A stretch of DNA of 57,251 nucleotides from Chlorokybus atmophyticus (GCA_009103225.1 RHPI01001719.1:30633-87883), one strand, 5' to 3'. Positions 3,530 to 57,058 are shown, counted from the first letter of the stretch. Made by a program: numbers and translations. Notes: generated by a model not told the origin, from the sequence alone.

Positions 3530-3695
3530 ATTATACTACTTTGCATACGATGAACGATTTACATTCCTTTTGTTTCAAACAATTATCCTACCTACAGTCC
3601 AACTTTGGCAAGAACGCCTAAGCCCTACGATCATACGCGTTCATCGTTATAAGTATGATTTACACGATGAACAACTGCGAATGCATTGAACATTC
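3530..3695. repeat. Split direct repeat B (terminal copy, 166 bp)
   Basis: Identical to 4131-4296 except gcaTacg/gcaCacg. Confidence 0.95.
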
Positions 3696-3933
3696 GGGAT
3701 GTACCGACGGTGGCTAGCAATGAAGCGAAATGCCGTTGATGTAACAACGTAATTGCACGGTCAGCAGCACGCCGTTGACGCAACCCGGATCCTATTCAAC
3801 CGAGACGAATGCATTTAGAATCACGATCCACTTATCTCGTTCCTGAGCATGAGCATGAACTTGAAAGCGCAATCGAGACGAGGCGCATAGTTCTTGTGAA
3901 GCGCGGCGGCGCATCAGGGTGGGGCGGGAAGGG

Positions 3934-4132
3934 CGAATTTTCGCCGTCGCCAGCAGCGTCGCCAACAACGCCGCCGCTGAGGTGCCGGCCTCAACTGCTC
4001 TGTTGCTTGACACGTGTGTGTCAAGCAACAGAGGCAAACCCTAACTTAAACTATACGTATTAATCACTTACTTATTAATTTGTTAAACGAAAACTCGCCG
4101 GCCAATAGTTGAAGCCGACGAGTAATGCCCAT
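3934..4132. repeat. Split direct repeat A (internal copy, 199 bp)
   Basis: Identical to 9300-9498 except gtgCcgg/gtgAcgg. Abuts B, sharing the dinucleotide AT. Confidence 0.95.
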
Positions 4133-4296
4133 TATACTACTTTGCACACGATGAACGATTTACATTCCTTTTGTTTCAAACAATTATCCTACCTACAGTC
4201 CAACTTTGGCAAGAACGCCTAAGCCCTACGATCATACGCGTTCATCGTTATAAGTATGATTTACACGATGAACAACTGCGAATGCATTGAACATTC
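4131..4296. repeat. Split direct repeat B (internal copy)
   Basis: Direct repeat of 3530-3695. Confidence 0.95.
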
Positions 4297-4362
4297 TACC
4301 TCCCCCTCCCAAGCATATATCAGTAGGGACGAGTTGTAGGTGTAGAGCCTGGTGTATTTGTA

Positions 4363-5712
4363 TTGCCAAAGTTGCAAATCAAGATAGTTTTGTTTGGTTG
4401 CCTGACACAGTGTTTGATCCTTGCGCAGAGTGCTGCGCGCAGTCGTCTGACAATGTGTGTGATCGTTGTGCAGATGGACTTCGCACAGCGCTTGCAACAT
4501 ACCGCTGATGCACAACGCACCGCACGCGCGACTGTGCGTCCACAGCAAGTAATGGGGTGTAATCTGCGAGAGCGAGCAGCAGCAGCGCTTTTGGAAGTAG
4601 AGCGCATCAGTCGTGAAGCTGTATCTGATGGCACTCGCGACCAACGCGATCGCGTCTGGCAAGAGTTTGCCAACTACCTGCAACATCCTGAGCTCAACAT
4701 TGCCGTCGCCAACGTCACCCCAGCTATTGTCACAAGCTACCTTGCTGGGCACTGGACCGACACACACATCGGCAAAGCTCGCAGGCTCGACCGCCATGGT
4801 CATCGCATGATCGCCAGCACCACACTAGACAATGTGATCTCACATCTCACATGCTCCTTCAGACTTCTAGGGCGCATCAGCCCATGGGACAGCGACACAT
4901 CCACAGGGAACCCGCTTCTGTCCATAGACGTGCGCGAGTTCCGTCAAGGATATGCAAAGATTGCTGCTCGGCAAGGAGTTCAACCTATTCCTGCTGTGCC
5001 ATTGGCAATTGATGACATGCGAACGCTTATCGCATACTTCCAACACCAGCTGTTTACCATACCTCAGCAACTGACAGTCACACATGATAAGGCTGTGCTC
5101 TGGCGCGACTATGCACTTTGCCTATACCTATGGTGCACATGGCAACGGGGTGGTGAAGGTGCGCGTTTACAGATGCACGAGATACAAGCGGCAGGTTCTG
5201 GGTTGACGGCCACTGTAACACATCTCAAGAATTACAGCACTGGAGGTGCACCCACTATACCAGTGCGCAGCAGTGGTTTGCCTGTGGAGTTCTCTGAAGT
5301 GCTCTATGCCTATTTGACCTACTGTCGCGGGAGCTGCTTTGCCATCACCGCTGGTCCTCTATTTCGGCCTGTTGCGAAGAATAGGTTGAAGTGGGAAGAA
5401 CATAGCATGTCTGGTAACTGTGCATACCATGCAATTGCGCGCTGCTGCAAGGCATGTGGCATATATAGGCCGCACCTGGGGTTGCACTCTTTCAGACGTG
5501 GTGCCGCTCAGAGCGCCTTCCGCTGTGGCGTTACTCTGGAAGAAATACAAGCTCAAGGCACATGGAGAAGTTCTGTTATCATGCACCGTTACCTACACGA
5601 AAGGTGCGCTTACCCAATGCACAAAAGCACAAATGTATGGGTAGCGTCCAGGGTTGATGCTGTTTTCGGGTACTCGAGCACCACGTTCAAACCATTCGGG
5701 CCGTGGGCCTAA
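4363..5712 (+). CDS. Tyrosine recombinase of the DIRS-type element
   Basis: 449-aa open frame with WQRGGE (catalytic R), LFRPV, HSFRRGAA (HxxR) and GTWRS...HRY (W and catalytic Y, codon 5590-5592). True start uncertain. Confidence 0.9.
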   Translation: MPKLQIKIVLFGCLTQCLILAQSAARSRLTMCVIVVQMDFAQRLQHTADAQRTARATVRPQQVMGCNLRERAAAALLEVERISREAVSDGTRDQRDRVWQEFANYLQHPELNIAVANVTPAIVTSYLAGHWTDTHIGKARRLDRHGHRMIASTTLDNVISHLTCSFRLLGRISPWDSDTSTGNPLLSIDVREFRQGYAKIAARQGVQPIPAVPLAIDDMRTLIAYFQHQLFTIPQQLTVTHDKAVLWRDYALCLYLWCTWQRGGEGARLQMHEIQAAGSGLTATVTHLKNYSTGGAPTIPVRSSGLPVEFSEVLYAYLTYCRGSCFAITAGPLFRPVAKNRLKWEEHSMSGNCAYHAIARCCKACGIYRPHLGLHSFRRGAAQSAFRCGVTLEEIQAQGTWRSSVIMHRYLHERCAYPMHKSTNVWVASRVDAVFGYSSTTFKPFGPWA

Positions 5713-8015
5713 TCTCTCATAATAAGTGAATTGCCAGTTGCGGAACACTGGCCACCACGCAGCAGAGTGCCATTCAGGCACCAACAACACAGCTGGCAGC
5801 TGGTAATATTGCAATAATGCTATGGCTTCATGCAGGAGGGCCAATGGCGGGTGACACCAAACAAAGCCGCCCCCTAAGCGTTGAAGAACATCGCGCCAGT
5901 TTGTAGTAAGAGCATTGCCCAAACTTCCAGGCATGTGTATGTAACTCAAATAAGCAGGTGCTTTGCTGTTCCAATCAGCTGCAAAACAATCCAAAATTGG
6001 GTGTCCAACACGTTGTTGTACAAGCGCGGTTGCGTCTGCGGTCAGGGCCCAATCTCCTCTGTCAGTAAATTTAGATAATGCATCCGCATCACGCAGCTCA
6101 TCACGTGAGCGCCACACACATGTCAGCGCAATATCACGCTCCCAGCACAAAGACCACAATTGATGTAAAGCTTGTAGGATATGAGGCTCAGAAGCAGACA
6201 GCTTGTTGAGCATTTGAATCGCTGGTTGACAATCGCCAATAATGCGCACTGTACAGTGCTGAAGATCGTGCGTGCGTGCTACTTCAGTAAATGCTTGGAC
6301 ATAAGCGAGTGCCTCTTTGATGGCCGAAGGCAGCGACATATGCTCAGGCTGAAAGTTGCCTGCCATGCGAGGCCAAGGACCTGTCGCCCCCCAACCAATG
6401 GTACCCGAAGCATCCACGTGCAGCTCAAGCAGTACGGGGGGCTTCCACCAAGCGTTGCCATTGTAAGTCTGCAAGCCAGCAGCAGTCCACTCACAGAAGT
6501 GTCTGAAGGCGTTCGTATCACTCACAGTATCGTCCCATGCATCAGCAACCAACGCTAAACGCATCAGCTGGCGAGCATAAATGCTTGCAGGTGCAAAAGC
6601 TAGTCTTAGCGCAATCAATTTGCCAGCAATGCGTGCCAGATGACGCTTGGTCAATATAGGAGCTTCTGCTAACTCCTTCATCAGCTGCAATAGCTTGGTC
6701 AGCTTGCTTGCAGGAATAGCAAAAGAGCCTGCCACAGTGTCCACCAGCAGACCCAACATCTGTACCACCTGCTCCGGCCACAACTGGCTTTTCTTCACAG
6801 AAATATATATTCCAAGCACCTTAAACAGACGCAGTACGCGGCGAATGCGCCAGCACAAATGCCAACGATTGGAATGGCTGAAGTGCATGTCATCAATATA
6901 GGAAAGGCATGGAAAGCTCATAGCCCGTAAAGGCGTGAAGACAGTGGACATCAAGTTCGTAAACAGCCAGCATGCTTGACTCAGGCCAAATGGCAGCACA
7001 TTCCACCTGTATGTGACTCCAGCAAATCGCAAAGCCAAGTAAGGCTTGCTGTCCTCATGAATGGGCACATGATGATAACCCGACTTCAAGTCCGCTGTTA
7101 CTTGCCAAAAGTGGCGCTTTGTGTACAGCAATATATCGCGCAACCTCTCATAGTTGAAGGGAATGTGGCGCAAAAAGACGCTTGGTCAATATACCTCAGG
7201 TCCATAATGAGTCGCAAACGTTTTTCATGCTCAACCACTCCTATGCCAGTGACCACTGCCGCGCTGTGCGCATTAACTACAGAGATTGCTCCTGTTGTCA
7301 CCAAATTTGCCAACTCACTGACAACGTATTCGCGATGTATAGAAGCGGACTTGCGATTTCGAAACACAACTGGTGTTGGGGAATTGCGTGACAGCATAAT
7401 TGTAATATCCTCAACAGCAAAGCCTTCGGCCTGTAACAATGCATGTACTTCTTCCCACTTGCGTCTATCCGATGCTTGAGTGCCGACCCATTGTAAGCGA
7501 TACCCGTAACGCAACCAGTCAAGCACAAATGTCTTCTTGCTTTGCATCGTCAAGTGAAACCATGTGGTCCATGCTGCGAGCTTCTGCTGCAAAGAGGCTG
7601 CCACAAAATTTTCCGCATTAAGAGTTTCGGTGTGTAGCTGCTCTGCCCATTGGGTTGCTGAGCTGGGATGCTCTTCAAAGCCTGTTGACACTTGTGACAA
7701 CTCCGCATATACTGAACGAATGTCCTCTTGTTGCTGTGCAATAGGTAAGCTCGCAACAGTGTGTGGCACTTGTGTAATAACATCAGTGTGCTCCTCTGGT
7801 GGGGACAAAGGGTCCACTGCCAAAGCTGGCATTGCAGGATCCCACTCTGCTTGCATGCAATCATCCTCAAGAATGGCACTAATAGCGACGAGTTCTTCAG
7901 ATGTGCTATGTCTGCGCACATGCCAATCAATTAAGCTATACCAGAAGTGACTATTGGCCTTTCGTATGCGAAATAACCCTGTCAAGTAACATACAGCTGT
8001 GTGTATCATACACAC
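5593..8015 (-). CDS. DIRS-type Pol: reverse transcriptase - RNase H - DNA adenine methyltransferase-like domain, with a 1-nt frameshift at ~7170
   Basis: WLRYGYRL, RLIMDLRY, DLKSGYHHV, LPFGL and YIDD (RT); VDAS, E, IIGDC and DALS (RNase H); DCFA...WCHPPL...LLVPEW (MT). Split over ORFs 7098-8015 and 5593-7173. Confidence 0.88.
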
Positions 8016-8205
8016 ATGCCATTGTCAGCCATGAACAGCTGCACTTCAAGTACACTATAATACATCATCCAAACATGCACACATGCGCAGTTGCGCGCAT
8101 ACATGCATACATGCGCGCTTGCGCCAGCTATGATACACACCAGCACCTGTCGACATCTTCTGCTATTGCACTGTAGCTACTCGGCAGCTGTACTGGCAGC
8201 ATGAC

Positions 8206-9270
8206 TTACTGCTGCAATGCTAGGCGTGGCTGCTCTTGCACGGGGACATAGTATGCCAGCGCTTCCTGGTGAGCAGGCGCAGCCTGTTGATTGTTGTAGC
8301 CGCCTCCGCGACCGTAACCACCACGACCACCGCGGCCGTAGCCACCACGACCGCGTCCACGCTGGAACTGGGTGCTCCCTTCTTCTGTGACGGAGCGCTG
8401 AGGGACAGAAGTCTTTGCCTTTTGCATGGCTGCTTTGCCCTGGAAGCTGTTGGCGAGCTTGGTGAGGCGCCGAATCACCTTGGCTTCCTTGTGTTTGCGG
8501 TTGATGCGGGCGTCGTTGATGATACCTCGAGCCCCGGTCGCAAAAGCTGCTGCAAAGTCCACGCTACCGTGCACGTGCGTGAGCAGCATCTGATACAGAT
8601 ATGACACCAACTGCGCAACTGGCGGACCTGTGAAGAGGGCACGGCCAATCGCCTCGAAGCAAGCCTGCACACCAGTCGAGACCTTGCGCGTGCGGTACTC
8701 CTCCCACAAGGCATATGTCTCTGATTGCTTGGACAGGCGCTTGATGAAGCCGATGTGCTTGATGTATTTCGTATGCCTATCTCCAGAGTCGGAGCTGTCC
8801 GTATCAGAGCTAGATGATGACGAGGAGGTGGATGACGAGGACGACGTGCGTCTCTTCTTGTGCACCTTCTTCTTCCTCTTGAACCTCTTCTTTTTGTTGT
8901 CCTCCTCCTCCTCCGAGGTGGATGACAATTCCACTCTACTACGCTGACGTCGCGGAACCGTGGGCAGCTTTAGCTTGGCAGCTTGCTCTGGCTCTGCAGC
9001 GTTTTCCAGCGTCACCTCTGGCTCTGGCTCTGGCTCTGGCTCTGCGTCGGCCGCATGTGACTTTGGCGGCACAGGCTGAGCCGTACGCCTAGCTACCGGC
9101 GCAGCAGGCTGCGTGGCCTTCCGCGCTGCTCGCCGCTGCTTGGCCGCGCTGGCCTGCCCCTCATCACCGGCCGGTGATGCGGCCTGCTTGCCTGGCTGCG
9201 CAGCTCCAGCAGCCGGCTTCTTTCGGCCGCGCTGCCCGCCAGCAGCCACAGCCCGCCCCTTCGGCGGCAT
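8206..9270 (-). CDS. Gag-like ORF1 of the DIRS-type element
   Basis: Open frame from MPPKGR (ATG at 9270) just inside repeat A. Basic/Ser-rich low-complexity N-half, RGG-rich C-terminus. Called from position, not from a domain match. Confidence 0.7.
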   Translation of the reverse strand: MPPKGRAVAAGGQRGRKKPAAGAAQPGKQAASPAGDEGQASAAKQRRAARKATQPAAPVARRTAQPVPPKSHAADAEPEPEPEPEVTLENAAEPEQAAKLKLPTVPRRQRSRVELSSTSEEEEDNKKKRFKRKKKVHKKRRTSSSSSTSSSSSSSDTDSSDSGDRHTKYIKHIGFIKRLSKQSETYALWEEYRTRKVSTGVQACFEAIGRALFTGPPVAQLVSYLYQMLLTHVHGSVDFAAAFATGARGIINDARINRKHKEAKVIRRLTKLANSFQGKAAMQKAKTSVPQRSVTEEGSTQFQRGRGRGGYGRGGRGGYGRGGGYNNQQAAPAHQEALAYYVPVQEQPRLALQQ

Positions 9271-9299
9271 CTCTCTCTCTCCTCTCCCCAAACTTTCGC

Positions 9300-9498
9300 C
9301 GAATTTTCGCCGTCGCCAGCAGCGTCGCCAACAACGCCGCCGCTGAGGTGACGGCCTCAACTGCTCTGTTGCTTGACACGTGTGTGTCAAGCAACAGAGG
9401 CAAACCCTAACTTAAACTATACGTATTAATCACTTACTTATTAATTTGTTAAACGAAAACTCGCCGGCCAATAGTTGAAGCCGACGAGTAATGCCCAT
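9300..9498. repeat. Split direct repeat A (terminal 5' copy)
   Basis: Direct repeat of 3934-4132. Confidence 0.95.
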
Positions 9499-11442
9499 GG
9501 TCCGTGCCGCACCTTGTATGGTGCGGCACGGACCAGTACTCTACGCTGGTTCCTGGATGCGGACCAGGAGTGGGCCCGCGGCTCAGCGGCCCAGCAGCCG
9601 CGCACCGTACATAGTTCGTACCGCACCATGTATGGGGCGGCATGGACCAGCAATGTTGCTGGTTGGCGGCCCTGCAGGGCGCGCTACACGTGTAGCATGA
9701 CTGAAGTATCGTTATTGCATGTACGAGTACATAGGTACATTGTGTGTATCATCATTTAATAAATGACAGGCCGCACCGACTGTCGCTGCTTACCATAAAG
9801 TGGACAGTCGCAAATGGTCGGCGGCTGTCAATGTATAATGACAGCCGGCTGTCCATGTACATTTTAACTTGACAGCCGCCGACCAGTTGCGGCTGTCCAC
9901 TTGTGGCCTATACATGTATAAATGGATATGTGTATACATATAAATATATACATATAAATGGATATGTGTATATATACATATATATATATGTATACATGCA
10001 TATGTATATATATATATGTATACATGCATATGTATATATATGTTGATAAATATACGTGTGTGTGTGTGTGCATGTAGGAATAGGCTTAAGGTATACAAGC
10101 AAAAATTATTGACGTATTGCGGCCGCAATACGTAGCCGTGCAATTACTTCATATCTATCATTTCATGTACATACATTGTTGTAAGTATATTGATGCGCGT
10201 ACACATGTGCATTAGACCTTTCATATGCAAAATTATATATATCTAAAATAATGTATAAAAATATGATTGTACAAAGTGTTATGATTACTATACAATTACA
10301 TAGTCTACAATTATAATTAAAGCAAATTTACATCCATGCGTTGCGCGTGTAATTACATTATATATAGTTCGTTGGTTATTACATTATTATGATGTTCACA
10401 ACCGTTAATATCATACCATGAATACATATGTTGATGCTGTTCGCATGTTGCATTGCTAGGCGTAGTTTATGGTATGATTGATTTTAATAATTTGTATGAA
10501 ACAAAAGCGCAAGCAATGTCAGATGTTATGACTTATAGCCTTACTTGTATAACCTCATAAATGGCCTATAAAAGCCTCATGCGACCACAGAATCATCGAC
10601 AGCCCGATAAGGTACACTGGCTGCATTGACAGTCGCAATTTGGCTACTATCACTAAGCATTGTCATAATGACAGCCCCTAACAAGTCTACAAATTGTACT
10701 GGCGTATTGACAACCGCCGAGTTCGCGGCTACCGGTATGTAGTTTACCACCGTCCATGTAACTGGTACAGCCTATAAATGCTACAATTGCATAGGCTCAG
10801 CCTATGGGCCTATCAAAGTGACACACAATCTCCGACTGTCCATCGGCAATTACTGCCGCCGGCCGACAGTTGCTAAGCGGCTGTCGGCGCATGCAATAAA
10901 CAACATGATATAGGTTGCCATACGGCCCTACCGGTACGTGCACTTGTAGCTTAGTGGTTAGGGCGTCGTCTTTGATATGCTAAAGGTACTGGGTTCAAAT
11001 CCGGCCGATGCGGTGTGTTCTTGACTAATCATTCCACTAACTCCGCGGAGCTGGCCGCGGCCTCCTGCGCCGCAGGTTGGGCGTGGCCGGTGCCGCCGGC
11101 AAAGATGTCTCAACTTTTACTGCAGTTGCACTAATGTTTGCATTGTTTCATATTAAACTTCGGTCGATGGTCCGCTGGCCGGACCAGTTATTGAAGTATT
11201 GTGATGACTTTGTCCCTGGTCCGATGGCTGGACCATACCTGGTCCTGACGCAACAGTAATCGGCCGGACCTTAAGTGGTGCGTACCAAGGGACAATGGTA
11301 CCATTCACGTGAAATTCGGACCATGAACGGTCCGACTGTCGATGAAAACAGACCATGCAAGGTCCACCGATTTCATTTAGCAGGGGGAAATCCCGGTCCT
11401 GCGTCACGGACCATTCATGGTCCTTGAACGTCAATCCGTGTG
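9499..11442 (-). mobile_element. Non-autonomous CACTA/CMC-type element, one TIR retained
   Basis: Terminus (reverse complement) CACACGGATTGACGTTCAAGGACCA at 11442 matches 53815. GGACCA-N4-TGGTCC subterminal palindromes at both ends, GACWGTC/GACAGCC motifs, AT-rich core, no convincing ORF. Confidence 0.7.
9905..10075. repeat. (TA)/(TATG)/(TG) low-complexity microsatellite
   Basis: Runs such as tatatacatatatatatatgtatacatgcatatgtatatatatatatg. Confidence 0.85.
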
Positions 11443-11980
11443 ATACATACACAAAGGGCAACGCAAGACACAGAACTACCTCAAAGATGCACCCAGGCTG
11501 CATGGTGGCCATGCAGGTAAGTGCTGTACATGCACTCACCGTCCATTCATACGTGCATGCACTCATGAATGATATGCACAGGAGAACGCCTACATGACAC
11601 ATGAAACATTTGCTGCCTGGTTCAACCACTTCCTAGGCTACGTAGCTGGGGGCTCCAACCTCAGTACCCATGCATCCTCGTCATTGATAGCAAAATGTAG
11701 CTGGACCTCATCTTCAAGGCTAGAGAGCATGGAGTGCACATCATCCTGCTCCCTCCTCACCTGACACACACCATGCAAGTAGTGTTGCTGTGCATACTCT
11801 ACAATAGAACAATCAATACATGCTCTGACCTCTATTGCTGTAGGTGCTGGATGTCTCTTGCTTCTCTAGCTTCAAGGCTCGTTACCGTGAAGAACACCAC
11901 AAGCACATGCTGCGACAACAACCCGGACATGATGACCAAGGACGAGTTTGTGAAGCATCACAGCGAAATCATTCATGTTG
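11443..11980 (+). pseudogene. DDE_1 (pogo/Fot1/Tc5-like) transposase remnant with two introns
   Basis: Spliced, frameshifted reading: YIHKGQRK...GCMVAMQ|ENAYMTHETFAAWFNHF...ILVIDS...AREHGVHIILLPPHLTHTMQ|VLDVSCFSSFKARY. This matches the DDE_1 consensus NGWMT.E.F..W...F / LILD / LPPH.TH.LQPLD...F..LK..Y. Introns 11517-11581 and ~11777-11842. Confidence 0.75.
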
Positions 11981-46139: not shown

Positions 46140-48480
46140 GCTTCGTCCTCGAAGCTCGCGAGGATGTCATCGAGGAAGATAGTCACGCACAACGTCTCGA
46201 GCATTAGCCAAGTGTGCCTCTGGCTCTCAGGATGCTTCATGCAATGAATAGCCCTTCCATTTCATTAAGAACTTGCGCACGCCATGCACAAACTTCTCAC
46301 CAAGGATGTCTTCTACCTCCCACCCTGGTTCACCATCCGTGCCAACTTTGGGGGGCGGCCTTCCCGGCAGTTGTCCTCGATATGCTTTCAACAAGGAGAC
46401 GTGAAAAACGGGGTGCACATGCATGGTGTCGGGTAGCTCCAGCTTGTACGCCATGTCCAAAACTTGTTGACCGTAAATGGTCCCAACCAGCGTTCATTCA
46501 GCTTGCAAACTCCCATATGCACCTGTACATGCTTCGCGGAGAGTAACACAATGTCGCTTTCCAGAACTGTGAGGTGTCGGCGATGCGCGTCCGCGTACTG
46601 CTTCTGCTTGTTTTGTGCCACCAATAGCGCCTCCCTAGTTGCCTTATTAATGTCCGCGCACTTTGTGAGGAAGTCATTAGCTGCCTCCACACGCACGTCA
46701 TGTCGTCGCGGTGTCCATGCCGTCAACGGTGTCAATGAATGTTGCCCGTAGCTGATAAGGAAGGGAGTGACACCTGTGCTTGCATTGTTGTGGTGGTGGA
46801 TCGTAAACTCCACCAACTCAAGCAGCTCCGCCTAATTGTCTTGTTGCGCGTTAACGTAGCCACGCAGCATGTTCTTAATCACACGGTTGGCCCGCTCCGC
46901 TTGCCCATCAGTTTGCGGGTGGAATGCCGTGCTAAACTTTAGTGTGGTACCCAGTGCACTATGCCGCGCCTCCCAAAACTTACTTGTACAGCGCGGGTCG
47001 CAATCACTCACAATGCTTTGCGGTAATCCATGAGAACGAAACACATGCTTCACGAACAAGCGTGCGGCCTCCGGTGCCGTGCAAGATCCGCCACACCGGT
47101 GCCAAGCGTACCATTTACTGGTTTTGTCGACAAACACAAGTATAGCGTCGTACCCTTCATTTGTCTTTGGTAGCCCCGTGATAAAGTCCATGGTCACTTG
47201 CTCCCACTTGGATAATGGCACAGAGAGAGGTTGCAGCAACCCACCTGGCTTTTGGTTGCTTGCCTTCACCCTTTGGCATGCGTCGCACAACGTCACGTAG
47301 TCGCGCACATCGCGATGCATCTCTCGCTAGTAATAACGCTGCTTTAAGCTTGTCAAAGTCCTCTCCAACCCTTGGTGACCAGCAATGGGCACGTCACGAG
47401 CTTCCTTCAGCAACTTCACACAAATATGCACGACGTTGGGGATGTACAAGCGCCCGTGGTGCCATAGCAGCCCGTCGCGCATTGACCAATGCCCACTTGT
47501 CACAACACGGACACGGTGTACGTAGCTGCATTTTCCAGCTCTTGCAACACTTTCATACCCTCCGTGTCCTCACAAAGCACTTGCCGAAGCTGGTCGGTCC
47601 ACTCAGGCTGCACTTGAGCGAGTGCCTCAATTGCATTAAGCCGGCTCAGCGCGTCAGCAACACCATTTGACATACCGGGCTTGTATTTGACATCGAAGTC
47701 AAAAAGTTGAAAGAACTCCAGCCATGGTGCTTGTCTGCGACTTAGATGAGGTTGTGTTTGTAAGTACCTCAATGGGGAGTGATCCGTCTCAAGCACGAAC
47801 TTTTTGCCTTCCAAAAAACAATGCCATTGTCGTAGCGCCATTACTTGTGCAAAAAGTTCCTTCTCGTGCACGGGGTAATTCAGCTCCGCACCACTCATCT
47901 TCTTGCTGAAGAATGCTACTGGTTGAAGGCCGTTGCCATGGTCTTGCTGCAAAACAGCTCCTACGGCTGTGTCGGACGCGTCGCAAGCCAAAATAAATGT
48001 CTTTTCCATGTCGGGGTGAGCCAGGACTGGTGCCTCCGTCAGCGCCTTCTTCAACGCAGCAAATGTTCCTTTGTTGCTGACCAGCTCCAAGGCTTTCTCT
48101 TCTTCAGTAGGGCAGTCAAGGGAGCAGCTATGCGCGAAAACCCCATAAATAAACTTGCGATAATACCCCGCAAGGTTTAAAAAGGACATCACTTCCTTTA
48201 CGTTGGTCGGGGAAAGCCCACTCGCGCACCACCTGCACTTTGTTGGGGTCCGGCTTGATGCCTTCATGCGGCACGATGTGGCCTAGGTACTCCACCTCTC
48301 GAAGTAACAATTTGCATTTTTGTAGCTGGACGTACAACTTGTGTTCGCGCAAACGCTGCAACACGCGCCGTAGAAGTGCCACGTGCTCCTTGTCATGCCT
48401 ACTGCCCACGCATACCAACTTTCATCGAGCATGGCTACATCAAAACCATCGCCTGGCCTACCAGCATACCAGCGCGCGCG
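46140..48480 (-). pseudogene. Ty3/Gypsy chromovirus pol remnant (RT end, RNase H, integrase, chromodomain)
   Basis: KCKLLLREVEYLGH, CDASDTAVGAVL, NYPVHEKEL, TDHSPL, VTMDFITGLP, HPQTDGQAER, WLGPF and WEVEDILG..KFLMKWKGY. Several frameshifts and stops; the YxDD-equivalent appears degenerate (MLDE). Confidence 0.92.
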
Positions 48481-50777: not shown

Positions 50778-53639
50778 AACACCAACAACTACGCCAACGC
50801 TCGCGCGGAAAAGCAAGGCTACACGGGGAAGAACCGCCCTCCTCAGCATGAGGGACTGGAAGAACGTCCGCGCGCTGCTGCTGTTGCCACCAAGGCTCTA
50901 GCCAACCCGCCAGCTGATGACCATATGGCTGCTCTCATAGCGCGTATGGCACGCTTGGAGGAAAACAATGAGCAGGACTACCCCGCCTGTTACTCTGCCC
51001 AGTGGGCACTTATGGCTCTAAAGCGCACGAGAGACACCAGCACTCGGTCGCGTATTCAACCATCCCAACGAGTTCGAGGGGAAGCCGCAACATCGTCAGC
51101 AGGCACCTCCTCTGAAGCCACCAATGGTACTGCACCAGCAGCAACAGTTACACCGGCTACGACGTCCACACCCGTCAACGTCAGCAGCACCTGCTCCTTT
51201 TGCATCAGAACTTGGTATACCAATGCGCACCGTAACGCCCCAACCGGGGAACACGCTGGCAACAGCCACTACTGTCACCGACCCTGCAGCAGTAGGTCGC
51301 GCCGATCCCGCTCCAACTGCAGAGCCACCTGTGTCAGCAAGCATTGAGACCACCCTCGCGCCATTGAGCGGCAATCTCGCCACCACCGGCAGTGCCATCG
51401 TCGCGCCTGCTGCCACTGCAGTGACACGCGCAGCTACATTGCCCGCCCTCGACGTCACACAAGCTGTCCCGCGAGGTCAGCAAGCTGAGCGTGCTTGGGA
51501 GACCATCATGCGTGGAGCAGATACCACTACCAGGCGCGGAGGGCACGGAGGGGAGCGCACAACACGCGTTGAACGCAGTGACCAAGTCTTCCCACTGCCT
51601 GAATATCACACGCTGCTAGAACAAACTCAGCGGCAACTGAAGGATGAAATCCTCACTGGCACAGTGCTCCCATGCAAGATCGTGTCTTCGTAGTCAGAAC
51701 ACCTGTTGTACTGAAGTTGGCACTGCAATTGTTCTGGACTCTGCATAACGACATGCAGACGGCGCCACGCCAACCCGCACCAGTCCGTCATGAACCCTTT
51801 GAACCCAGCCCACTGGACACGTATTGCGACTGGCAACCCAACGTACAGTAGCACATCGCTGATACATCCGACATGCCTCTGGGTGACAACGAAACACTGA
51901 GGCCCCTCAATACCGTTCGACTTCATGAGTGCTACACCACGCTGAAACAGGCGTTCACCTGGCGACAGGACCAAGCAGCAATTAATGCAAGAGCACACGC
52001 CCTTGCCAAGCTCGCGCTGGCGGTTTTCAACCCACAATTGCTGGCCCATCATCCAGTACGGCACCTCTCGTCGGTGGGCCCGACAGTGATCAGATGAGGG
52101 CGCTGGCCCAACAAAGCGGGGGGGTGATCGCCCCTCTGCTACCTGTCTTGTTAAAAGACTTGCCTGAAGATCAACGGGATCCAGGGAGAGGCTACCTCAC
52201 ACCGCAAGGGTGGACACAACGAGATGGAGCAGGTTCAATCGGAGAACAGCAACTTCGCATTGCCTTGTTGCGACAAGCAACCATGCTGCACCGACAAGAA
52301 GGCATCGGCCTGAGACGGATGTTGGGGATGCGGGAAGGTGGTAATGCAGCTGGAGCAAGACTGGTAACTTGGCTAGTCACCAATCACCCCGCGGTCCCCC
52401 TGTTCGCATTTGGCATCTAATTGTTTTGGTTGGACGCCTTGCTGCGCTCGCTACGGCAAGCCTATGACGAGGTTGCATCGGCAGCCATTGACACCTTAAA
52501 AGGAGCTCAGGAGGCCATACTGAGGTTGGCAGGGGTGGAAGCAGCGCGGCAACGCAGACGCATCGCAGCTGCTTATAAGCAGCATGTCCAACAGCCGGAG
52601 ATTTACCTCACTGTGCGGGCACGAGCAACAACGGTGCTGGAAGTGGGGGTGGTCAATGGCAGATGGGATGCCTACATGGCAGGGATCCCAAGGGTTCCCA
52701 CCATCACCCACGACATAAGAGCGCGGCTCATGTGTGCAATGTATCTCCGGCCCATGCCTCAGAATCACCGCTGCAGTGACGTGGTCAACAACCCAACATC
52801 CACATAAGAAGGTACACTGGTCAAGGAGGCAGCTCATGCAGTATGCTGGACTTATGTGGAAGAACAGGCTGCACGGGAGGCGGGCCCACAAACAACCGAT
52901 CCTCCAGGGTTTCCCCAACAGCCAATGGCTACGCCGCCAGGAATGACCCCGGCCACACAGAGGCGCAATCCCCCTGCGCCGCAACCAGGGCAACCACAGG
53001 CAGCACCGCCAGCACCCAGGCCGCAGTGCGTATACCAACAGCCAAGACAAGAACGATTCGGGCCAGGCCGCGGACAAGGAGGTTGTAAAGATCCAGCTGG
53101 TCGAGGGGCGCTTGCCGCACTATGCTCGACACCACCGGAGGAGATTGCAGCAGCAGTCACCCCACGCATACGCTACCGACGATTTTACCGACGAAGCGGC
53201 TGCGCATCCACGCCAAGGCAAGCATGTCACTATCAAGGGACGAACACCCAAGCGTGTGATGCTGGACTCTGGTGCCCAGCCTACCATCATCGGACGTTAC
53301 CTTGTACGCGACCTTGGCATCACCAGCGCTGAGCTGATGCCGTGCCCATACGTTCTCGACACCGCAACCGGCAGCCGTGACAAGGTGATTGGCATCACCA
53401 AGCAAGCCCTCTGCATTCGCTTGACAGGAGTGGACCCGTCCCACAGCACCGAGGTCATACAGAAGTGTGTGGTCACCGACGCAGAATTCTTCCTATTGGG
53501 ACAGGACTTCAATTTCCCTGTTGGCATGGGGCTGGACTGCTGGACAGAGAAGGCATGGTTTCGTCCTCATTGGGATGAGGAGGACGGAGAGGTTCAAGAA
53601 TATCTACCTCTCGAGCTGGTGGCTTGCACTCGTTCCCAC

Positions 53640-53759
53640 CGCAGGTCAGCTGCAACAGCCACCTACAGGTCGTCGTTGGCAACCACTAACAGGTCAGATG
53701 CGACAGCCACCCACAGGTCGGGTTCGACAACCACTGACAGATCATCTGCGGTGCTCACC
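53640..53759 (+). repeat. 24-bp degenerate coding repeat x5 after the protease
   Basis: Units of the form xACAGGTCxxxTxCxACAxCCACx, encoding xRSxxTxT. Confidence 0.7.
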
Positions 53760-53833
53760 CACAACTCGGACCAAAACTCTCCTATCCCATACGACGAGTC
53801 TCATGAAGATGCCACACACGGATTGACGTTCAA

Positions 53834-54470
53834 GGACCAGGTATGGTCCTTTCACGGACCCCCAGGACCATGCATGGTCCGTATCCCGCGGGCCAGGACT
53901 GCCTGGTCCACGAGTGACGGACCGTTCCTGGTCCGTTCGGGGTCCCGAATCCTGGTGCGCAGTCACGCACCAGATGTGGTGCGTGGCTGGACCAGACATA
54001 TTACCGGTCCTACTGGCCGCGAAAGACTGGACCATACACGGTCTGCAGCCGGACCAGGCATATTGCCGGTGCGACTGTCAATGGGTGTACGGACCATGCG
54101 TGGTCTGGACCACAACAATGCCGGTCCATATATGTTGCGGTGAATGAATTCGATGGGACTGGTCCGAACCACACTGATTGGGCGGACCGTTGCTGGTGCA
54201 CGCTCAGCTTATCGGTCATTTTGGACAAGCAGCACGCACCATACATGGTCTGCCGCCTTAACAAGCTCTTACTGGTTCAAAATCTAGTAAGTTGTGGACC
54301 ATTCATGGTCCTTAAGCTAACCAGGCAGCTATTGGTCCAAACTGTCGTATACTTGCGGACTGTATATGGTCCTTGACTTAACCAAGCTCTTCCTGGTCCG
54401 AAGGTCTGGGAGAGTACGGACCATGCGTGGTTCTAGGTTGGTCCGCAGAACAGTGATTGGGACCATCGCT
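53834..54470. repeat. Subterminal array of GGACCA-N4/N10-TGGTCC palindromes, ~61-62 bp period
   Basis: Short-spacer sites at 53967, 54029, 54091 and at 54236, 54296, 54357, 54418, interleaved with long-spacer sites (53989, 54051, 54107 and later). Confidence 0.85.
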
Positions 54471-54784: not shown

Positions 54785-57058
54785 ATGGCAAGCAAAAAAG
54801 CTGTCAAGTTTGCCAGGGACATGAGTACCAAGTTGGGAATCAACTTGCAACCAGCCGATAAGAGGAACACCAGTCGTAGGCACCGCCGTCGCAGCCAACA
54901 GAGTTCCCTACCCATGCCGGAGCAGGCGGCTGATGTGCAGCACGATGTTGACAACCCACAGCCTGCCCATGAAGTTGAGGCCACGCACGACCAGCTGGAT
55001 GGTGAGATCAGCCAGCAGCATGAGCGGTAAGTTAACTTGCTGACCTTACTTGCTTCTCTGCAATGGTCACGCGGTCTTCTGTGCATGCCACCAGCTATCG
55101 TTGCTGTGACAGCCTTCACCAGTAATATGTCCTTCACATGCTAGGAGACTGTCAACGAACTGCACGTGCACTAGCTGCCTTGCTGTGTATTGCTGTCAGT
55201 TGATGGTGCCAGCGCATATGGTCTAACTGCTGGATTTCTGTAGGCCTCCCGCAAATCAACAGCGGACTGTCCATGTGGCCGGCATCACTACCAGTGGAGT
55301 GGCAGCCACACTTCACCCAAGGCAACAGCCGACTGTCAATGTTGCCAGCACCAGCAGTGCCGCAACAGCTCCACTGCAATTCAATCAGTCTGATCAACAG
55401 CCGACTGTCAACATGGCTGGCACCAGCAGTGCTGCCCCCTCTCAGCAACCATGGCAACAATCAGACCTGCAAGAGACTGTTGACATGCCAACTGACAACT
55501 TGCATGCGCTGACTAGTGACGAAGAGGCTGTTGAAGAACCCGAGCAGCAAGAAGTCTCCCAGAGGATTTGCTCTTGCCTGAGGTGCCATGGCAAGGTGAG
55601 CACTAATCATGTTGCTCATGCTCACTCATAGCGCGCACGGTTGTTGGACATGCACTGAGGCTGTCCATGCGACTGTCATGTTCGCCCACTGCTATGCGCA
55701 CAACGTTGTGAACCATACTTCAGTTGTTGACTGCCCGTTTCTTTTGGCAGTTGATTGACTTGGAGACTGCCATGGCCCACATGCGACTGGACACGGCGGC
55801 GCAAGAAAGTATGCACCCACCGCCAATGCCTTCAGCACAATGCGATACCCCTCAACCAGGCATTTCTTGCCAACAACAAACCTCAGAGACACCTACGCAA
55901 AAGATGCTGGATAAGTTCATGTCACTGCTGACAGACTTGGAGGACTCTCATGCCCAGCAATCACTGATCAATAAGGTGCTGAAGATTGTTTTCGGCGCTG
56001 AGGATTCAATCGTTCAGCTTGCCAAGGATCCTACTTATGACCACAGTCAGCTGCGAAATGACCTCCACGCCTTGCTCGGCCAGCGCAACCCCTCCCAGCC
56101 GGCTGACATCACGGCTGTCGATGCATTGCTGACTTCCATCGGAATGCCAGAGTCGCAGAGATATACAGCATGCACGAGATGCAGTTATCTCTTTCCAGAT
56201 GCTTACCCATCCGGGTTCGATGACAGCGAGGACAGCTACGAGGCAGATGACAGTCGCCACAAGCTTGTGAAGCGCTTGTGGAAACAGCCGTGCGGAGGCC
56301 AATGCGGGCGCACGCGCAAGGAGTGCATTGACTTTCTGTACACACCCATTGGTCCAAGGCTCGGTCCGTGGCTGCAAGTACCTTCTATTGCATATGACAA
56401 CCTTGCTGCTTGGCGAGACAAAGACACCTGGCTCGACGTGCCAGTCAACCAGCCCCCAGTGCCTCAATGGGAAGATTGGCATGGCAGCAAGTGGAGAGAG
56501 CTGTCTTTTTTTTGGGACTGCACGAAGACCATTCCTCTGCCAAACAAATGCGATTGTGGACGCTACAATGATGACATTGACATGTCCCAGCACAGGGATG
56601 GATATCAGAAATGGCATTGCGAATGCTCCTATGACAATGAAGAGGCTGCGCAGCAGTGTACTGGAGACCCGCGCAACATTGCGCTCATGCTGCACAGTGA
56701 TGGTTTCAGCTGCGCATCAACTACAAAGCGGAGCAGCCTTGTCATCAACGTTGTTGTACTCAACGGAGGCAAGCGCGTCAGCTCACAGGCTTCTTCCATC
56801 ATGCCCGTGGTGTTTGTCCCAGTTGACGAGCTACTCGACGCTGACAAGGACTGTCTAAACCCGTTTATGAAGCCCATGCTGGATGAGTTGGAGGATTTGT
56901 ACGCCATGGGCTTCCCTACGCACTACGGTTTGGACTCCAGCCAGGTGGACATCAAGCTCCCTCATCGATCGGCCGGTACGCTTGATACATCTGTTCACAA
57001 GACCTCGTGCGCAATGCTGTGTCATGAATGTGACTGTCGACATCGCCTGTCAACTTAA
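54785..57058 (+). CDS. CACTA-type (Transposase_21-like) transposase, spliced, C-terminally truncated
   Basis: Exons 54785-55026, 55244-55595 and 55751-57058 join in phase. CSCLRC (CxCxxC), CTRC, WEDWHGSKW, DPRNIALMLHSDGF (first catalytic D) and LNPFMKPMLDELEDLYAMG; similarity is lost after ~56995. Confidence 0.8.

Follow-up and report, generated by a model that had tools for sequence, protein, structure and literature searches.

A probable PAT-group retrotransposon of the green-algal convergent-recombinase lineage in Chlorokybus atmophyticus

The analysis of a stretch of 57,251 nucleotides of the Chlorokybus atmophyticus genome (GCA_009103225.1, RHPI01001719.1:30633-87883; hereafter the window, with positions counted from its first nucleotide) revealed a retrotransposon of the DIRS order, 5,969 bp in size, which occupies positions 3530-9498 on the minus strand and is complete at both ends. 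In all likelihood, it is a full-length copy of a PAT-group element belonging to the green-algal lineage of the kangaroo type, in which the gene for the tyrosine recombinase (YR) is convergent to pol, and it would replicate by the scheme that we infer below. To our knowledge, no class of retroelements is less well understood than the tyrosine-recombinase retrotransposons, and only DIRS-1 has been tested experimentally. Elements of this kind are already known from green algae and the novelty is modest, with an inverted YR already published for kangaroo and for a PAT form of Daphnia; what is newly worked out is the extension of the backwards YR to a whole clade, the mobility of the internal junction, and the partitioning of a coding overlap between pol and YR.

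In the sense of pol, the layout of the element is A(199)-gag-pol(RT/RNase H/methyltransferase)-[opposite-strand recombinase]-B(166)A(199)-238-nt spacer-B(166), where RT stands for reverse transcriptase; that is, along the minus strand, the 199-nt repeat, gag, pol, the reversed YR, the 166-nt repeat, the 199-nt repeat, the spacer, and again the 166-nt repeat (Table 1). The labels A and B are exchanged when the + strand is read, A then being the 166-nt repeat and B the 199-nt one. Each pair of repeats carries a single mismatch, giving 2 mismatches in 365 nt, and the two internal copies abut each other with 2 nt in common (AT, 4131-4132). This order of genes and repeats, with 1 nt of difference per repeat pair, had been proposed in a previous interpretation made without database searches (the sequence-only reading), and was confirmed here from the repeats and the open reading frames (ORFs). 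The same reading had considered the insertion recent, and this also holds, because both repeat pairs are near-identical at the time of insertion in the published model (PMC6681497); judged in this way, the insertion is young relative to its own repeats.

Table 1. Coordinates of the element, of the loci compared with it, and of other transposon regions (window positions, unless a locus is named; repeat labels in the sense of pol).
Feature	Position	Strand	Description
5' terminal repeat, A1 (B2 on the + strand)	9300-9498	-	199 nt; matches 3934-4132
Palindrome inside the 199-nt repeat	9364-9399; second copy 3998-4033	.	36-nt inverted repeat, 16-nt perfect arms, CACGTG (G-box-like) core
gag-like ORF	8206-9270	-	354 codons + TAA; ATG at 9270, stop 8208-8206
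GTAAGT hexamer	8204-8209	-	splice-donor-like; encloses the gag stop TAA
pol part 1	7191-8024	-	frame 0; conserved N-terminal region and first RT motifs, ends ...RLRLIMDLRY
Frameshift site	7186-7190	-	ATTGA between codons adjacent in the L003 homologue; net -1/+2, TGA in the downstream frame
pol part 2	5593-7185	-	frame 2; 530 codons + stop; RT core, RNase H, Dam-like methyltransferase
Tail-to-tail pol/YR overlap	5596-5712	.	117 nt, coding on both strands
YR gene	4453-5712	+	419 codons from the first ATG + stop; frame open from 4363
Internal copy of the 3' repeat, B1 (A2 on the + strand)	4131-4296	-	166 nt
Internal copy of the 5' repeat, A2 (B1 on the + strand)	3934-4132	-	199 nt
Unique spacer, internal junction to 3' terminal repeat	3696-3933	-	238 nt
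3' terminal repeat, B2 (A1 on the + strand)	3530-3695	-	166 nt
L009 (environmental contig)	A1 2062-2322; B1 10685-10864; A2 10863-11123; B2 11254-11433		genes between A1 and B1; B1 and A2 overlap by 2 nt (AC); 130-nt spacer before B2
L010			A1, gag-pol, B1A2, reversed recombinase, B2 (kangaroo layout)
L001 (sister clade)	3859-8897		A, gag-like ORF, BA (4-nt overlap), pol, co-oriented YR, B
Further transposon ORF regions of the window	47500-48267; 53112-54143; 55724-57058		three regions

The flanks of the element (...CAGAATT and GGTCCGTG...) show no target-site duplication, and the target shares only the dinucleotide AT with the internal junction. Terminal inverted repeats were not reported within the element, its sole inverted repeat being the 36-nt palindrome, which sits downstream of an AT-rich stretch on the sense strand. 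The 238-nt spacer has no second match within the window, no further copies or solo repeats were found when the element was compared with the 57-kb window by self-BLAST, and the search of the whole window against Rfam gave no match. That this layout is an artefact, produced by the mis-joining or duplication of a terminal repeat, is very improbable: assemblers fail at repeats, but each repeat pair contains one real mismatch, the junction is precise to the base, and an environmental contig from an unrelated assembly (L009) shows the same layout, including the spacer and a 2-nt overlap.

As a separate observation, the flank directly adjoining one terminus of the element carries a perfect 15-bp inverted repeat (window 9499-9535; GGTCCGTGCCGCACC, a 6-nt loop, and GGTGCGGCACGGACC), which could be the result of a target preference or a coincidence.

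The gene content and the repeats allow the element to be placed among the known groups. It combines RT and a tyrosine recombinase and lacks a DDE integrase, as is proper to the DIRS order, and Pfam detected no integrase or rve family in any of its ORFs. The split direct repeats (A1...B1A2...B2) are those of the PAT group, whose members carry repeats of this type and may have an inverted YR (PMC3266345), and a Dam-like methyltransferase located after RNase H sets the element with DIRS1/PAT and apart from Ngaro and VIPER. On the other hand, neither the inverted terminal repeats with an internal complementary region that define Dirs1-like elements nor the Gag zinc finger motif of the Pat1-like ones are present. 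The split direct repeats and the methyltransferase thus bear out the sequence-only reading in its assignment to the PAT-type tyrosine-recombinase retrotransposons.

The antisense position of the recombinase is clear, with YR on the + strand and pol on the minus strand, as had been noticed before. The YR product matched the Phage_integrase family with an E value of 8e-6, just under the Pfam cut-off, and a profile built from it and four relatives aligned to Cre over the N-terminal and catalytic domains (E 1.8e-12). In this alignment, residues R262, K289, H375, R378, W401, and Y410 (numbered from position 4363) correspond to R173, K201, H289, R292, W315, and Y324 of Cre, so that all the catalytic residues, six in number, are in place, as claimed in the earlier interpretation. 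No direct match of YR was found in the PDB, Cre being reached by the family profile only. A recombinase of the ALOG type described for DIRS elements (Iyer and Aravind 2012) was discarded, with no match to ALOG_dom up to an E value of 10 and no cysteines in the corresponding stretch.

The 3' ends of the pol and YR genes overlap tail to tail, a feature that, together with the frameshift of pol described below, had been overlooked in the sequence-only reading. The codon of the catalytic tyrosine (5590-5592) abuts the stop codon of pol (5593-5595), and YR continues beyond it with an RCAYP motif (5602-5616) that is common to its relatives and faces the last residues of pol. Because the alignment of pol with its relatives extends to residues 524-527 of 530, and RCAYP is also kept in those of YR, the overlap is real coding sequence on both strands. 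Within it, the unconserved tail of YR lies opposite RGARVP (5668-5685), a conserved motif of pol, an arrangement in which the constraints are partitioned between the two genes. Two genes on opposite strands might also be found in a chimera, with a Crypton-like recombinase DNA element inserted into a retroelement in the antisense direction, or result from an inversion local to the window copy. We consider this extremely improbable, because nine related loci, which come from three or more algal genera, repeat the convergent arrangement with YRs homologous to one another, the overlap is a precise one, and both genes are enclosed by the repeats.

The pol gene runs from 8024 to 5596 on the minus strand, in two frames. 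It gives a match to RVT_1 with an E value of 3.8e-17, with YIDD at 6900, followed by the catalytic pattern of RNase H (DAS...E...D...D, 6420-6090) and by the Dam-like methyltransferase region, in which the family motifs D.FA...N.K and PP..L were found (DCFAAD at 5991 and CHPPL at 5856). The match to PF05869 (Dam) has an E value of 1.5e-3 in the window copy, below the Pfam cut-off; this family was also found in five of nine aligned relatives, with a best value of 1.9e-7.

The change of frame is located inside the RT domain. The homology of the first part of pol to its counterparts in four related loci (L003, L005, L006, and L007, by tblastn) stops at the Tyr codon 7193-7191 and resumes in the other frame at 7185, and the two pieces abut exactly on L003 (3605/3604). 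As a multiple of three would be needed at this point, the five bases at 7186-7190 break the frame, which we read as a mutation, an assembly error being the less likely origin. A programmed -1 frameshift in pol was excluded by the location of the site inside the RT domain and by the lack of a slippery heptamer. It could still be argued that this copy is autonomous, the frameshift being an assembly error or being bypassed by ribosomal or transcriptional slippage, given that pol is otherwise open over ~830 codons, that the repeats have diverged so little, and that a run of T5 lies 10 nt downstream of the frameshift. However, the shift falls between RT motifs and not at the gag/pol boundary, no canonical X XXY YYZ heptamer is present, and the defect with respect to L003 consists of five extra bases that leave the T run unchanged, so that we regard autonomy as quite unlikely. 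If the frameshift is taken as a mutation, the window copy, with a broken RT, could move only with proteins provided in trans. Of the recent activity suggested for the element in the sequence-only reading, the young insertion is maintained, but the pol of the copy in the window is frameshifted.

The product of the gag-like ORF is basic and has an RGG-rich tail. It has no match to any Pfam family, and a CCHC zinc knuckle (CX2CX4HX4C) was neither seen in the translation by eye nor detected as zf-CCHC in Pfam. Beyond gag, pol constitutes a separate ORF at a distance of 185 nt, with stop codons between both, and therefore its expression needs reinitiation or splicing. Regarding splicing, the stop codon of gag is enclosed in a GTAAGT hexamer, a context with a probability of ~1 in 64 by chance once TAA is given, and AG acceptors from which the pol frame stays open are found at 7950, 7935, 7911, 7905, and 7878, 260-330 nt downstream of it. 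Splicing of gag to pol from the GTAAGT at 8209, considered in terms of frame openness only, is put forward as a hypothesis only.

To place the element among its relatives, the two pieces of pol were searched separately and unrepaired. The word-based search with pol retrieved a Chlorokybus protein fragment 44% identical to it and metagenome proteins with identities of ~30%, and that with the recombinase found relatives only ~28% identical; the word-based protein search with the pol alignment gave no further named relatives. A full HMMER search produced 487 proteins at E<=1e-30, the best of them outside the Chlorokybus genome showing 32-35% identity, with Klebsormidium nitens GAQ84615.1 and a protein from Panagrolaimus superbus, which belongs to the nematode family where PAT was described, as the only ones with a name among 20 top matches. 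The provenance of the nearest protein, from Chlorokybus, agrees with the streptophyte-type alga that had been proposed as host from the sequence.

A maximum-likelihood tree, quickly built from 83 pol sequences with two Ty3/Gypsy proteins as root, grouped the element with the Chlorokybus fragment (support of 99 in the Shimodaira-Hasegawa-like approximate likelihood ratio test, SH-aLRT) within a clade of 26 RT sequences (SH-aLRT 100, branch length 0.44), the Panagrolaimus protein appearing in a distant basal clade. YR was convergent to pol in nine of the nine members of the 26-sequence clade whose DNA was read (the window element and L003 to L010), including a fragment (L004), a set of degenerate pieces (L008), a locus from Klebsormidium nitens (L005), and the contig BRXT01000178.1 (L010), from an accession range assigned to Pleodorina starrii, which is closely related to Volvox (PMC10256686). 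By contrast, YR was encoded on the same strand as pol in L001, L002, and L011, three sister-clade loci. An opposite-strand YR had been regarded as uncommon in the sequence-only reading, and this does not apply to its lineage, as every readable member of the clade has it; the statement in the same reading that such a YR is carried by kangaroo from Volvox was correct (PMC4157794). As for the RT phylogeny suggested there as a check, the tree contains the convergent-YR clade, but the reference sequences of kangaroo, TOC3, and Pat1 are absent from it.

The organization of the repeats, in contrast to the direction of YR, varied among these loci (Table 1). L009 has exactly the A..BA-spacer-B layout of the window element, and its pol and YR ORFs show an overlap of the same tail-to-tail kind, of 54 nt. 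L010 shows a different layout, that of kangaroo, and because the layouts of these two loci differ, the internal junction shifts its position from one related element to another. No repeats were detected in L003, L005, L006, and L007, which may reflect degenerate copies or contigs of insufficient length. The overlaps at the junction in four elements measured 2, 2, 4, and 0 nt; extension by chance gives an overlap of at least 2 nt in ~16% of elements, and finding it in three of four has a P of ~0.01 (hand arithmetic), which hints that target and junction are identical over a short stretch, as would follow from tyrosine-recombinase strand exchange.

It was also observed that the empty site reconstructed for L009 is a palindrome (ACTCGTAC-A-GTACGAGT) with 8-bp arms and the shared AC near its centre (L009:2020-2070 and 11420-11470).

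Among the named elements, kangaroo from Volvox carteri has an inverted YR, lacks a zinc finger in Gag, and carries its internal repeats between the methyltransferase and YR (Duncan et al. 2002, summarized in PMC4157794). It resembles the window element in being a PAT-group element from a green-algal host with split direct repeats, a methyltransferase, an inverted YR, and no Gag zinc finger. In our tree, its place is taken by a proxy, the element with kangaroo layout from Pleodorina starrii (Volvocaceae), which falls in the same RT clade and whose protein shows ~31% identity with the pol of the window element. Unlike in kangaroo, where B1A2 lies between the methyltransferase and YR, the junction in the window (3934-4296) is located beyond the YR gene and is followed by the 238-nt spacer, which occupies the interval that holds the YR gene in the kangaroo layout; in addition, the window element differs from kangaroo in its ORFs, which overlap tail to tail, and in its streptophyte host. 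Closer in arrangement is the PAT form of Daphnia pulex, with an inverted YR and the internal repeats placed directly before the 3' terminal repeat (PMC4157794); this is the gene and repeat order of the window, compared by description only and with no spacer stated for it. However, the Daphnia form comes from an animal host and is sister to the Pat1-like elements, its likeness to kangaroo being judged homoplasious (PMC4157794).

TOC3 and TOC1 from Chlamydomonas reinhardtii likewise belong to the PAT elements of green algae, have split direct repeats, and lack a Gag zinc finger, but the YR of TOC3 is co-oriented with pol (PMC4157794). TOC1 differs from the window element in being non-autonomous. 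A unique stretch splits the right-hand repeat halves of TOC1, and this stretch may be comparable to the spacer of the window element. DIRS-1 from Dictyostelium discoideum shares with the window element RT, RNase H, a Dam-like methyltransferase, a tyrosine recombinase, and the lack of target duplication, as well as a copy of the joined ends inside the element, on which the rebuilding of full-length cDNA depends (PMC7192593). In contrast to the direct and split repeats of the window, those of DIRS-1 are inverted terminal repeats accompanied by an internal complementary region, and its YR ORF overlaps pol on the same strand and not on the opposite one.

The window element was classed as neither kangaroo nor TOC3, because its junction lies at a different position from that of the former and its YR runs in a different direction from that of the latter. 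We file it as a putative new family in the kangaroo-related, convergent-YR PAT lineage, the named elements having been compared by their published descriptions. A new family had already been suggested in the sequence-only reading; it is separate by sequence, with 32-35% identity at best outside its genome, but its layout is not new, as it recurs in L009 and has been published for the Daphnia PAT form. Alternatively, catalogues such as Repbase or Retrobase could already list the family under a kangaroo-like or TOC-like DIRS from Chlorokybus or one of its close relatives, only this copy being new. DIRS and Ngaro elements have indeed been counted in the repeat annotations of Chara and Klebsormidium (bioRxiv 10.1101/835561), and curated work on Chlorokybus transposons exists for other element classes (PMC8557442). 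Nevertheless, DIRS elements are mentioned neither in the genome paper of Chlorokybus nor in its supplements, and no protein above 45% identity was found among 1.84 billion representatives, which makes a previous catalogue entry unlikely.

For the replication of this PAT element, a scheme can be drawn by analogy with the DIRS/PAT model, in which the RNA is thought to be devoid of the outer parts of the terminal repeats and the internal copy of the joined ends lets RT rebuild them (PMC6681497). Experiments on DIRS-1 have shown its internal region to be indispensable; linear, single-stranded molecules make up most of its cDNA, and its proteins work in trans (PMC7192593). In the window element, the genomic RNA would start inside the 5' repeat, downstream of an AT-rich, TATA-like stretch of the 199-nt sequence, and would end inside the 3' repeat; RT would use the internal BA junction as a bridge, rebuilding complete joined ends, and YR would insert the cDNA by crossover at the same junction. 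The leader that extends from the 199-nt repeat to the ATG of gag contains no upstream ATG. YR would be made from an antisense mRNA of its own, probably starting from a TATAAG located in the adjoining copy of the 166-nt repeat (4131-4296, + strand), ~200 nt upstream of the YR ATG; the leader from ~4285 to 4453 is free of ATG, and the promoter role of TATAAG is one that we infer from the sequence. TGTAA, present twice in the 3' repeat on the sense strand, was tried as a poly(A) signal and dropped; neither strand has AATAAA, and UGUAA has been reported to be absent from streptophyte poly(A) signals (PMC1868727).

Several points weigh against the assignment of the element to the kangaroo-type lineage with this replication scheme. 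Both transcripts, their promoters, and the splicing are predictions from the DNA sequence, and the analysis was confined to the window, with a single copy of the element in one assembly. The link to kangaroo rests on the layout and on the Pleodorina proxy, in a tree that lacks the three reference elements and that came from a quick search without a mixture model. Finally, the methyltransferase match of the window copy is weak.

With the element placed in this lineage, a broader proposal can be formulated, which we consider rather doubtful: the PAT elements with convergent YR would constitute a single old lineage that extends over Chlorophyta (Pleodorina, Volvox) and Streptophyta (Klebsormidium, Chlorokybus), in which the junction shifts by way of two equivalent junctions and which is tied to RNA interference. 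If this were true, the internal BA junction would sit between gag and pol, as in the sister-clade locus, between pol and YR, or beyond YR, and its movement would arise from an intermediate with two equivalent junctions, either of them usable for integration. Likewise, the YR mRNA would be fully complementary to the genomic RNA, and this could tie the activity of the element to the RNA interference of the host.

The results indicate that the backwards YR is a trait of a lineage that reaches the early-branching streptophyte algae, and not an oddity of Volvox, that the internal end-to-end junction can occupy different places in otherwise related elements, and that the genes of two enzymes can share coding DNA on opposite strands. 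They also offer handles for the integration model, in the choice of junction and the 2-nt crossover, and for sense/antisense regulation. The classification of transposons is unchanged by these findings.

Apart from the element, an AT-rich, imperfect tandem/palindromic tract made of TATACATG/TATAAATGGATATG units was found ~400 nt from it (window 9909-10076), adjoined by a 43-nt inverted repeat (positions 9798-9902). Transposons also abound in the rest of the window, with ORFs for a Ty3/Gypsy-type RNase H, a retroviral-type aspartyl protease, and a tnp2-like transposase.

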